Assembly (NCBI GenBank): GCA_039096225.1
Contig: JBBPEB010000006.1
Coordinates: forward strand, 1,178,001-1,242,000
Direction: 5' to 3'
DNA from: Blastocystis sp. Blastoise
Lineage: Eukaryota; Protista; Bigyra: Opalinata
DNA: 64,000 bases
The position numbers were made by a program, and so were the translations under genes. Shown here piece by piece: positions 13,986-56,111 of the stretch (positions are counted from its first letter, which is position 1; every line of letters starts with the position of its first letter). The notes beneath the pieces were generated by a model that worked only from the letters and a program-made list of their open reading frames with translations, was not told where the DNA came from and did not search any database.

Positions 13986-15676
13986 ATGTTGCATCAGTTA
14001 TTCAATAGATCGTCTCAGAATATATTAAAGAAAGTAATAGAGTTCAATTCTAGTAATTCTTTGCGTTCATTTTCAAGGTGAGTTGATTGTTTCTTTCATT
14101 TTAAGAATATTATTATTTTATAAAGATTCCATAAGATATCTAATGATGATATAAATATTTCAAATGAGGATATAAAGTATCAAGTAAAGATTTATTATTT
14201 TTTTTTATTGATATAGAGATTCAATAGATTCAAAAATGAATAATTTAAATATTAAAAAAGATATTTCTACAAAATTAGAGTCTTATAAACCAAATAAATT
14301 GAGTGTACATAATTTATAATATTTTTTTTATTCTCTATATTTTATTATTAATTTTATATAAATAAATATTTTTTATTTTTAAAGAATAAGAATGAGCGAC
14401 TTTTATCTGTAGGTATTTGTGGTGCTCCAAATGTAGGTATGTTATAATAATAAACATAATAATAATAATAATATAATAATATAAATAAATATAAAGGGAA
14501 GAGTACTTTATTGAATACGTTGATTGGTGAGAAGATATCTGCTGTTAGTCCAAAGAGGAACACAACTCGGAATAGTATTACTGGCATAAAGAATATAAAG
14601 AATACCCAATTATTGTTTTTTGATACTCCCGGATTTATTCAACGAGGGTATGAAAATTATTATTATAGTTAAGAATTCTATATATAAATAGAATGATAAT
14701 TATTATAGTTAAGAATTCTATATATAAATAGATGATAATATTTATTATAGTTAAGAATTCTATATATACATAGAATGATAATATTATTATAGTTAAGAAT
14801 TCTATATATAAATAGAATGATAATATTATTATAGTTAAGAATTCTATATATAAATAGAATAATAATAGTATTAATATATTATAATGTTATGTATATAATA
14901 GAGTGAAGAATAAAGAAGAGAAAGGTTTAATGGCTACAGCAGAATCAACATTAATTGCAATGGATGCTTGTTTAACTTTAATAGATGGTACAAGTGGTTT
15001 AACTCCAATAAGTAAAGACGTTCTTGATAAGGTAATCAATACATGTTTCGTACATAATGTGAATCTATATCTTGTTATTAATAAAATAGATGAAGTAAAT
15101 CCTAAAACAAATTTACTTGCTTTAGCTCGAGATATGGATATATATACAAATGAATGTATAAATAATTATAAGCAACATGTATATAATATATAATATAATA
15201 AAATAATAGAATATAATAAAATATAGATAGAAGAATTAAATGAGTTTCAACGTTCTTTTAATTATAAATATTTATATATGATATCAGCGAAAGAAAGAGA
15301 TGGCACAGAAGATATTGTACATCAACTCGTTGATGATGCTAGGACATCCCCGTGGTTATATGCACGAAATAGTAAGAATACAACTGGATTCCAAGGAATA
15401 TTAATGGAAATAGTACGAGAAAAAGTGTTTTTGTTATTACATAAGGAACTTCCTTATCGTATTCAAATAGTTAATGATATATATGAAGAAAAAGAAGATT
15501 CTATACATGCCAATTTCAATTTTATTATAACAAATAAACATCACAAACGGATCTTACAATCTGTATTATCAACTATATATAAGCAAGTGATGCGAGAAGT
15601 GAATATAAATACAATTAAACCTATTACTCTATCGATGAAAATCCAAGTGAATTCAAATCAATTGAATCCACTTTAA
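13986..15676 (+). CDS. ERAL1: Era/ERAL1-like GTPase (probably organelle-targeted), copy 1
   Basis: Spliced frame has [33 protein letters not shown] and EIVREKVF...ELPY (KH domain). The N-terminus resembles a mitochondrial presequence. Confidence 0.9.
14659..14860. repeat. Intronic ~40-42 bp minisatellite, 5 units (4 units in copy 2 at ~54915-55070)
   Basis: Repeats of ATTATTATAGTTAAGAATTCTATATATAAATAGAATGATA. Confidence 0.9.
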
Positions 15677-16036
15677 AGCTAGTATTACTATCCTATTTCT
15701 TTTCATTCTCATTTTAAATTGATTTTTTTTTAAATTAATAGTTTATATATATAATTTATTCATTATTATTTATTGTTTATGTTTTTTTTATATTATTTTT
15801 TAAACTTTTATTAATAAAAAAATTATGAAAGCATCTATTACATAAAATAATTCTTTAACAATCATTTTTTATAATTCTATATAAACTATTTTAAAAACAT
15901 TTTCAATTAATTAATTATTTTTCTAAATATATTGATTCTTTAAATAAAATAAAAAAAGAAAACTATAACAACACATAAAATATTTGATTACTATAAACCT
16001 TTATTTATTAAATAAAATATAAAGAATTAAAAAAAA

Positions 16037-53530: not shown

Positions 53531-53751
53531 TTATGTGAATAATAATATTAGGATGATTTAATTGATCTATTGAAAAAAAATATTTCTGGTTTTTCAATAA
53601 CAGCGAATCACCGAGGTTTTTCCCGATTGTTCCATTTTCAGAATATATCAGTTCATTTCAGTTATTTCTTTTAATTCTTTATATTTTATTTAATAAATAA
53701 AGGTTTATAGTAATCAAATATTTTTTGTATTGTTATAGTTTTCTTTTTCTG

Positions 53752-56111
53752 TTTTATTTAAAGAATCAATATATTTAGAAAAATAATTAATTAATTGAAA
53801 AATGTTTTTAAAATAGTTTATATAGAATTATAAAAATTGATTGTTAAAGAATTATTTTATGTAATAGATATTTTCATATATTTTTTTGTTAATAAAAATT
53901 TAAAAAATAATATAAAAAAAAACATAAACAATAAATAATAATGAATAAATTATATATATAAATTATTAATTAAAAAAAAAATCAATTTAAAATGAGAATG
54001 AAAAGAAATAGGATAGTGATTATAGCTTTAAAGTGGATTCAATTGATTTGAATTCACTTGGATTTTCATCGATAGAGTAATAGGTTTAATTGTATTTATA
54101 TTCACTTCTCGCATCACTTGCTTATATATAGTTGATAATACAGATTGTAAGATCCGTTTGTGATGTTTATTTGTTATAATAAAATTGAAATTGGCATGTA
54201 TAGAATCTTCTTTTTCTTCATATATATCATTAACTATTTGAATACGATAAGGAAGTTCCTATGATTTATATATATTATATATTATTATATATATTACCTT
54301 ATGTAATAACAAAAACACTTTTTCTCGTACTATCTATATAATAATAATAATAATAATAATAATAATAAATAGAATACTTCCATTAATATTCCTTGGAATC
54401 CAGTTGTATTCTTACTATTTCGTGCATATAACCACGGGGATGTCCTAGCATCATCAACGAGTTGATGTACAATATCTTCTGTGCCATCTCTTTCTTTCGC
54501 TGATATCATATATAAATATTTATAATTAAAAGAACGTTGAAACTCATTTAATTCTTCTATATGTTGCTTATAATTATTTATACATTCATTTGTATATATA
54601 TCCATATCTCGAGCTAAAGCAAGTAATTTTGTTTTAGGATTTACTTCATCTATTTTATTAATAACAAGATATAGATTCACATTATGTACGAAACATGTAT
54701 TGATTACCTTATCAAGAACGTCTTTACTTATTGGAGTTAAACCACTTGTACCATCTATTAACTATATATATATATATATATATAAAGTTATTAAATACAG
54801 TTAAACAAGCATCCATTGCAATTAATGTTGATTCTGCTGTAGCCATTAAACCTTTCTCTTCTTTATTCTTCACTCTATTATATACATAACATTATAATAT
54901 ATTAATACTATTATTATTCTATTTATATATAGAATTCTTAACTATAATAATATTATCATCTATTTATATATAGAATTCTTAACTATAATAATTATCATTC
55001 TATGTATATATAGAATTCTTAACTATAATAATTATCATTCTATTTATATATAGAATTCTTAACTATAATAATAATTTTCATACCCTCGTTGAATAAATCC
55101 AGGAGTATCAAAAAATAATAATTGTGTATTTTTTATATTCTTTATACCAGTAATACTATTCCGAGTTGTGTTCCTCTTTGGACTAACAGCAGATATCTTC
55201 TCACCAATCAACGTATTCAATAAAGTACTCTTCCCTTTATATTTATTTATATATTTATATTATTATTATTATGTTTATTATTATAACATACCTACATTTG
55301 GAGCACCACAAATACCTACAGATAAAAGTCGCTCATTCTTATTCTTTAAAAAAAAAATATTTTTTATATAAAATTAATAATAAAATATAGAGAATAAAAA
55401 ATATATTATAAATTATGTACACTCAATTTATTTGGTTTATACGACTCTAATTTTGTAGAAATATCTTTTTTAATATTTAAATTACTCATTTTTGAATCTA
55501 TTGAATCTCTATATCAATAAAAAAAATAATAAATCTTTACTTGATACTTTATATCCTCATTTGAAATATTTATATCATCATTAGATATCTTATGGAATCT
55601 TTATAAAATAATAATATTCTTAAAATGAAAGAAACAATCAACTCACCTTGAAAATGAACGCAAAGAATTACTAGAATTGAACTCTATTACTTTATTTAAG
55701 ATATTCTGAGACGATCTATTGAATAACTGATGCAACATATCAAATAAATGAAATAAATGAAATAGAAATATATTTTTTACTTTTCAAATAAAATTCTTTT
55801 AAAAATATATTCATTTATTATTTTCAATTATATAACTTTTCTTTATTCATAATATATTCTTCTTTGAAATACTTGAGATATCTATAGTTTATTAAGAACA
55901 TATTTATGTTTTTTATAGATATCTATTGTTTAGTGATTCTTTATACTTGCTTCTATTCTATTAAAAGACATATCAATAGTTTATATAGATCATATACACT
56001 TGAATAATGATTTTAAATTAATTAAAATAATAGTATTCTTTTAATTATTCTATTCTTTATTCTCCATATTTCTTATTTTTTTCAACTCAACGAATTAATC
56101 AATGCATTATA
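53752..56111 (-). repeat. Segmental duplication copy 2 (inverted relative to 13611-15949)
   Basis: Near-identical reverse-complement match. Confidence 0.95.
54028..55738 (-). CDS. ERAL1: Era/ERAL1-like GTPase, copy 2
   Basis: Same spliced protein as copy 1 with few substitutions (e.g. KTNLL vs KTKLL) but a different intron set. Confidence 0.9.

Follow-up and report, generated by a model that had tools for sequence, protein, structure and literature searches.

How do two closely similar copies of a gene, lying on one chromosome, come to differ by whole introns, and in such a way that each copy has what the other lacks? The question is raised by a stretch of 64,000 nucleotides (nt) from the protist Blastocystis sp. 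Blastoise, positions 1,178,001 to 1,242,000 of contig JBBPEB010000006.1 in assembly GCA_039096225.1 (33.3 Mb in 34 contigs). This stretch, G000:C14:1178001-1242000 in our numbering and hereafter called the window, has a G+C content of 21-23% and contains two copies of a gene for the GTPase Era. A first-pass annotation, made from the letters alone, had described four precise differences in intron presence between these copies, and a global alignment of window positions 13300-16400 (plus strand) against 53300-56420 (minus strand) bears out all four, at the same coordinates and with exact junctions. The answer we argue for is that the introns are ancestral and were lost reciprocally, inside a conversion tract, and we lean towards recombination with complementary DNA (cDNA) of spliced Era RNA as the cause, a reading that we hold with some reserve.

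The two genes lie in an inverted duplication of 2.4 kb, found alike by repeat search, BLAST and global alignment (13608-16040 on the plus strand against 56114-53661 on the minus strand). The arms are separated by a spacer of 37.6 kb and their ends are sharp: outside them, identity drops to background. Inverted arms, sharp ends and heterogeneous divergence mark the pair as an inverted segmental duplication with ectopic conversion. The whole 33.3-Mb assembly holds these two Era copies only; both are intact, with a coding sequence of 1.16 kb, and both have NCBI gene models, which in this genome required introns to be supported by RNA-seq. The arms and genes are as follows.

13608 to 16040, plus strand: arm 1, with Era copy 1 and its 5' and 3' intergenic DNA.
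53661 to 56114, minus strand: arm 2, with Era copy 2.
13986 to 15676, plus strand: Era copy 1 (NCBI WA158_003290), six introns, stop codon TAA at 15674-15676.
13986-14077, 14126-14176, 14217-14304, 14385-14436, 14497-14647, 14902-15178 and 15227-15676, plus strand: exons of Era copy 1, from the reading frames.
54028 to 55738, minus strand: Era copy 2 (NCBI WA158_003299), eight introns, namely the five 5' introns shared with copy 1 and introns A, C and D, without intron B.

The differences between the copies consist of four segments of 37-48 nt, which we call introns A to D, and of a micro-exon enclosed by two of them.

54762 to 54798, minus strand: intron A, 37 nt, in copy 2 only; the junction in copy 1 lies between 14977 and 14978; spliced out in the NCBI model P0284.
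15179 to 15226, plus strand: intron B, 48 nt, in copy 1 only; the junction in copy 2 lies between 54561 and 54560; spliced out in the NCBI model P0166.
54334 to 54377, minus strand: predicted intron C, 44 nt, in copy 2 only; the junction in copy 1 lies between 15409 and 15410.
54298 to 54333, minus strand: micro-exon of 36 nt in copy 2, between C and D, encoding 12 residues of the conserved EIVREK..LH core.
54259 to 54297, minus strand: predicted intron D, 39 nt, in copy 2 only; the junction in copy 1 lies between 15445 and 15446.

Each of these segments begins with GTA, ends with TAG, is 92-94% A+T and sits in phase 0, and none could be retained without a disrupted reading frame or a stop codon. 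At every site the opposite paralogue shows the exact exon-exon junction, with no base extra or missing. Random insertions would not have GT..AG ends at codon boundaries in all four cases, and the pattern is therefore not due to chance. Microhomology at the junctions is absent (0 nt) from every site but D, where it amounts to 2 nt; no flanking direct repeats were found at the four sites, and the proto-splice contexts of A, B and C are atypical. The four are the last of nine introns and fall, as had been noted earlier, within the gene's 3' half; C and D, only 36 nt apart, are both missing from copy 1.

The micro-exon deserves a separate word. The NCBI model of copy 2 joins the donor of C directly to the acceptor of D and skips positions 54298-54333: here P0284 reads ..GILME followed at once by ELPY.., where P0166 reads ..[21 protein letters not shown].., and the skip lowers the Era family score from 175 to 138 bits. 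The skip in WA158_003299 may be real exon skipping, or it may be an effect of annotation, with reads mapping equally well to copy 1; the spliced messenger RNAs (mRNAs) are identical at the micro-exon, and short reads are therefore not assignable between the copies.

Whether the four differences are losses or gains can be read from related genes. The orthologue from Blastocystis subtype ST1 (P0285) is 41% identical in sequence and has seven introns of 30-32 nt by exact protein-to-genome mapping. We located introns by counting from invariant motifs, not from gapped alignment, which gives the following correspondences.

Intron 5, 4 codons after DTPG, phase 2: the same as ST1 intron 4.
Intron A, 30 codons after DTPG, phase 0: the same as ST1 intron 5.
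Intron B, 29 codons after NKxD and 17 codons before MISA, phase 0: the same as ST1 intron 6.
Intron D, 7 codons after EIVREK, phase 0: the same as ST1 intron 7.
Intron C, between E and [IV][VL]REK, phase 0: the same as an intron of the Era gene of Tribonema minus.

The probability that at least three of the four sites coincide with ST1 intron sites by chance is ~9e-7, and taken together the two tortoise copies (the Blastoise isolate presumably being the 33.3-Mb Russian-tortoise isolate of PMC12129017) have counterparts at, or no more than 1-2 residues from, all seven ST1 intron positions. A MAFFT alignment placed B six residues away from ST1 intron 6; we discarded this offset as a compensating pair of gaps, given that the spacer from NKxD to MISA is 46 residues long in the tortoise and ST1 proteins alike. 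The first-pass annotation had proposed that relatives' orthologues be used to polarise the differences, and they do so: since the positions and phases are common to outgroup introns, all four differences are losses. By this comparison the duplicates descend from a gene with nine short introns, including the four variable ones, of which A, C and D have gone from copy 1 and B from copy 2. Other candidate outgroups were uninformative, namely the ERA gene of the plant Handroanthus, which has no intron position in common and probably belongs to a different orthology group, and two metagenomic Era-like open reading frames (ORFs), which are intronless.

The next clue lies in the uneven divergence of the copies. 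In the duplicated flanks 36 of 740 sites differ (4.9%), and in exons 1-5 the same is true of 7 of 85.7 synonymous sites (a proportion, pS, of 0.08). Exons 6-7 show no difference at 146.7 synonymous sites and a single replacement at 15112 (Asn/Lys), and the contrast with exons 1-5 is significant (Fisher P 8e-4). The description of the copies as near-identical is thus right for exons 6-7 and too generous for the flanks and exons 1-5. Two further features are needed here.

14902 to 15681, plus strand: homogenised block, consisting of exons 6-7 and 5 nt past the stop codon; its counterpart in copy 2 is 54874-54023.
14648 to 14901 in copy 1 (254 nt) and 55083 to 54875 in copy 2 (209 nt): shared intron 5, made of tandem units of 40-42 nt.

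The homogenised block has one substitution in 732 aligned bases and contains all four sites of loss. Its 5' limit falls between 14770 and 14902, and over 14770-15681 about 14 neutral differences would be expected where 0 are seen; divergence resumes at 15682, six bases past the stop, with 17 differences in 364 sites of the 3' flank. Since a block with all four losses has no synonymous difference, we take the region downstream of intron 5 to be a conversion tract. Intron 5 itself has five units in copy 1 and four in copy 2, with a different order of two variant units, and the copies agree at every base of its first 57 and its last 71 nt. These rearranged units are the last differences to be met on the 5' side of the block. 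A further peculiarity was seen in exon 5 (14497-14647 against 55234-55084), where all five synonymous differences have G/C in copy 1 and A/T in copy 2, a one-sided pattern that does not occur in the flanks.

What process would remove introns exactly and homogenise the exons around them? In the course of events that we propose, a segment of 2.4 kb with a nine-intron, organellar Era/ERAL1-type gene would have been duplicated in inverted orientation, after which A, B, C and D would have been lost precisely and reciprocally, the five 5' introns being kept in both copies. The losses would come about when spliced Era mRNA was reverse-transcribed and the resulting cDNA underwent homologous recombination with the genomic copies. 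Because the two Era mRNAs are nearly identical, cDNA of one paralogue could convert the other, deleting introns and homogenising exons in one step, and such conversion between paralogues would explain why the exon block is homogenised and the rest is ~5% diverged. Three elements of this account are inferred from the pattern described above: that RNA was the template, that homogenisation and losses are connected, and how many events occurred and in which sequence.

Several observations argue for an RNA template. The introns are ancestral by the comparison given above, they were excised exactly and without a flanking repeat, the losses are biased towards the 3' end and neighbouring introns are lost jointly, and genes for reverse transcriptase are present in the genome. 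A direct trace of the template would be a tract that is limited to spliced, transcribed sequence and reaches to the poly(A) site; the one seen here takes in exons 6-7 and breaks off 5 nt after the stop codon, and the identical 71-nt tail of intron 5 is ambiguous in this respect. The lack of microhomology at three of the four sites argues against a microhomology-guided deletion of DNA. As to the enzyme, the search for reverse transcriptases that had been suggested earlier was fruitful: the genome contains at least 20 RVT_1 matches above the cut-off, at least 18 of them in intact frames of 2.4-2.8 kaa (thousand amino acids) with near-identical scores, and the retroelements with these frames look recently active. 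The intact frames lie on contigs C10, C13, C14, C15, C23, C29, C33 and C4, often in pairs ~8.6 kb apart.

The interleaving of the losses between the copies had been taken to exclude a single retroposition event. That conclusion goes too far, as one 3'-biased cDNA conversion, with a later reciprocal exchange of the B segment, would fit. Several separate events with short tracts might also have produced the pattern, as might cDNA made from partly spliced RNA. The fewest special assumptions would be needed if all four introns had been lost in one copy and the segment with B had then been exchanged reciprocally, through two crossovers between the inverted arms flanking B, that is, by a flip-flop inversion.

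A number of points weigh against this account and should be set out together. In either copy an intron persists that is flanked by sites lost in the other, which calls for additional events. The genes used for polarity come from remote relatives (41% identity in the case of ST1), and C is backed by one outgroup only. The sole model for copy 2 skips the micro-exon, which leaves C and D as separate introns a prediction. The identity of the last 71 nt of intron 5 is weakly unexpected, with P ~0.03 at the rate of the flanks and ~0.3 at that of the other shared introns, and would weakly suggest conversion at the level of DNA in preference to a spliced template. A second stretch free of substitutions, 14031-14239, spans the retained introns 1 and 2, from which it follows that DNA-level conversion probably also acts on the Era pair. 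Finally, the agreement of the tract end, 5 nt past the stop, with a presumed end of the transcript is only suggestive.

Comparisons elsewhere in the genome, which contains many inverted duplications, help to weigh these points. One of them is a palindrome on contig 16 (G000:C16:2030000-2055171 against 2065508-2090671; L014-L019), with arms of at least 25.2 kb, the left end not being reached, and a spacer of ~10 kb. Its arms are 99.6% identical, with 48 mismatches (0.19%) and 22 indels, and all 22 indels are of 6 nt or less, mostly in TA repeats or homopolymers, so that none is intron-sized; a composition heuristic for counting the introns of the arms was dropped, having missed all five known Era introns on which it was tried. 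A palindrome without intron-sized indels means that four independent losses within the time of one substitution are not to be expected, and it disfavours a sequence in which DNA conversion came first and the losses afterwards.

The other comparison is an inverted pair of SDHA genes on contig 18 (G000:C18), at ~586.4 kb on the minus strand and 603.6 kb on the plus strand (L021 and L022). Here one copy lacks two neighbouring segments with exact limits, one of 55 nt and one of 45 nt, with an exon of 91 nt between them; the longer has GT..AG ends, and the shorter has GT..TG ends after allowing for a sliding ambiguity of 2 nt. This duplicate is ~0.25% diverged at its centre and 3-7% at its edges, the missing segments lie in the least diverged part, and the shared introns, too, are nearly identical. 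Other recent paralogues, which the first-pass annotation had proposed to scan, therefore give a divided answer: the SDHA pair differs by two adjacent intron-sized segments, and the 25-kb palindrome shows none. Much the same applies to the claim of unusually rapid turnover. The SDHA pair behaves like the Era pair and the pace is fast by comparison with most eukaryotes, but the Era duplication is itself ~5% diverged and the palindrome, at 0.19%, lacks any intron-sized indel. A mobile-element origin of intron B was considered and rejected, its ~90 matches in the genome being a low-complexity resemblance to the (ATATA)n intron of a repeated element. Copies of the repeated element (L003-L008, 94-100% identical) differ only by indels in tandem repeats and microsatellites.

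Against this background, four other explanations have to be considered. In the one that survives best, the losses would be cDNA-mediated and of the same polarity, but the homogenised 3' block would be the product of unrelated, ordinary DNA-level ectopic conversion, and three or four independent losses with short tracts would then have occurred. The identical last 71 nt of intron 5, the substitution-free stretch at 14031-14239 with its two retained introns and the near-identity of the shared SDHA introns all speak for conversion of this kind, of which inverted repeats are known substrates. What it would require, if the DNA conversion came first, is three to four losses for one substitution in 732 bases, in a genome where a palindrome of 0.19% divergence has no intron-sized indel. 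It would also leave unexplained the coincidence of the block limits with the stop codon plus 5 nt on one side and with, or nearly with, the border of intron 5 and exon 6 on the other. We regard this explanation as possible, though on balance rather unlikely.

It is a good deal harder to believe that the introns were removed at the level of DNA without any RNA template, through microhomology- or hairpin-based deletion of palindromic, AT/TA-rich introns, with selection keeping the exact deletions. At 92-94% A+T, and with microsatellite cores, the introns could form hairpins; indels between young duplicates in this genome are mostly changes in microsatellite length, and D does have 2 nt of junction microhomology. 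However, the figure for A, B and C is 0 nt; each of the six events looked at, four of them in Era and two in SDHA, left a junction without a base too many or too few; and neither the 25-kb palindrome nor the L003-L008 family shows a partial or imprecise intron deletion. We consider such removal improbable.

An artefact, whether from mis-polishing, from contamination with cDNA or from a mixture of haplotypes or strains in xenic culture, would be very improbable. The isolates of PMC12129017 are indeed diploid, were grown in xenic culture and were assembled in metagenome mode. The assembly, however, was made from nanopore reads with Flye, followed by four rounds of racon and then by Polypolish and POLCA with Illumina DNA reads, and RNA served for annotation only and not for polishing (PMC12129017), which removes the polishing with RNA reads that had earlier been named as a way to refute the pattern. 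An arm of 2.4 kb is easily spanned by nanopore reads, and both arms are on one contig with different unique flanks and edges that are 5% diverged. Each copy keeps its other introns, unlike the outcome of a contamination with cDNA, and both genes were annotated separately with RNA-supported introns, the NCBI models splicing out A and B and using the donor of C and the acceptor of D.

The idea that some or all of the four introns are recent gains, in the form of AT-rich filler or microsatellite DNA that was inserted and recognised as introns, had been offered in the first-pass annotation and might draw on their microsatellite-like appearance and on the atypical proto-splice contexts of A, B and C, but it is so unlikely that we reject gain on the sequence comparison, as all four positions and phases match outgroup introns (chance ~1e-6) and the genome matches of intron B are of low complexity only and point to no mobile introner family.

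How does the cDNA-mediated loss for which we argue relate to known systems? In the reverse-transcriptase model of intron loss, cDNA synthesis starts from the poly(A) end, which leads to a 3' bias; the mRNA-mediated model is reportedly due to Fink (1987), and experiments in yeast are said to have been done by Derr and Strathern. The losses in Era resemble those of the model in their exact excision, their 3' bias, the joint loss of neighbours (C with D) and the availability of a cellular source of reverse transcriptase. They differ in being reciprocal and interleaved between paralogues, not a contiguous 3' block in one gene, and in lying inside a homogenised exon block, which suggests cDNA from the other copy or an added conversion at the level of DNA.

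Differential intron loss after duplication is likewise reported to be known, from segmental duplicates in Arabidopsis and rice and from paralogues of whole-genome duplications. The likeness lies in the use of paralogues as a clock and in the precise presence or absence of introns. The Era pair stands apart in having four such differences in a coding sequence of 1.16 kb at ~5% divergence, a far higher density, which should be read with the caution due to a single example picked because it was striking. Ectopic conversion and flip-flop between inverted repeats are familiar from plastid inverted repeats, the yeast 2-micron circle and palindromes. With these the Era pair has in common its inverted arms on one chromosome, its patchy divergence and its tracts without substitutions, and there are other inverted duplicates in the genome; ordinary DNA-level conversion, however, should erase intron differences, and the Era pair keeps them.

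The reverse-transcriptase model has been reviewed and tested in PMC3652778, and 441 precise intron losses are documented in Dictyostelium (PMC4683709). Within the genus Blastocystis itself, 35,412 introns were counted in ST1, 24,093 in ST4 and 18,200 in ST7 (PMC5608401), and the tortoise isolates have longer and more variable introns (PMC12129017). The setting is thus alike (the same genus, short introns and large differences in complement between lineages), but the papers on subtypes compare annotations, without mechanism or polarity, and the Era pair offers single losses within one genome that are polarised by outgroups. The process as such is known, and the Era pair is a clean and unusually legible new instance of it; the genome seems to hold several more.

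This legibility is what makes the pair of wider interest. Intron loss is mostly deduced from comparisons that reach across tens of millions of years, too long a time for the marks of its mechanism to survive. The losses in Era are young: the copies are 95-100% identical, and the flanks, the conversion tract and the candidate sources of reverse transcriptase can still be read. If the pattern holds across other paralogue pairs, it could help to explain the roughly two-fold difference in intron number among Blastocystis lineages, and it would provide a test system for the reverse-transcriptase model, for 3' bias and for the parts played by partly spliced RNA and inverted repeats; long-read DNA and cDNA data already exist for the Blastoise isolate. 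A more ambitious extension, which we put forward tentatively and think rather doubtful, is that tortoise-clade Blastocystis undergo ongoing, genome-wide, RNA-templated gene conversion by cDNAs of spliced or partly spliced mRNAs. Precise losses and homogenisation restricted to exons might then be visible at 0.2-5% divergence, with flip-flop redistributing the losses, a picture that we hold just as tentatively. Were it true, these organisms would be a culturable protist in which the mechanism of intron loss could be observed directly and not inferred from old comparisons. A more practical implication concerns annotation: where spliced mRNAs are identical, their reads cannot be assigned between copies, and the model of copy 2 skips a conserved exon of 36 nt.

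The identification of the gene as Era was made with single exons and with the full-length database entries P0166 and P0284 as queries; the seven-exon model of copy 1 matches these proteins residue for residue. Exon 5 matches Pfam MMR_HSR1 (E 1.1e-10), and the GTPase motifs G1 (GxxxxGKS), G2 (TTR), G3 (DTPG) and G4 (NKxD) of a TRAFAC GTPase domain are all present in the alignments. The best NCBIfam family of the full proteins is GTPase Era (NF000908, E 1.5e-51, positions 5-278 of a profile of 291), with a score of 175 bits that lies under the bacterial equivalog cut-off of 237. The C-terminal exon alone matches proteins of Era length (~300 amino acids) at about residues 150-260, that is, in their C-terminal domain (best E 3.9e-13), and no relative above 36% identity was found for it in a library of 1.84 billion proteins; P0163, a candidate close relative, turned out to be a paralogue within the same genome. 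No Pfam match to KH_2 was obtained in the Blastocystis Era proteins P0166, P0284 and P0285 from the tortoise isolate and ST1. The core EIVREK..LH.ELPY is kept, and in an alignment with bacterial and other stramenopile Era proteins the column of the GxxG loop is a gap in the tortoise and ST1 proteins. Blastocystis retains an organelle genome (PMC5608401), and an assembly factor of the small subunit of the ERAL1 type is therefore to be expected; judging from their sequences, the Era copies would presumably act in this capacity in the organelle.

Two observations concern the surroundings. The right edge of arm 1 (16040) adjoins the stop codon of a minus-strand neighbour, the ORF at 16037-19486. 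This gene beside Era copy 1 ends in an unbroken frame of 1149 codons, in a genome that is otherwise dense in introns. Elsewhere, the TLD domain (PF07534) has at least 156 matches on many contigs of the genome, a large lineage-specific expansion, in which some copies have the domain in one open frame of ~500 amino acids and others in short pieces.

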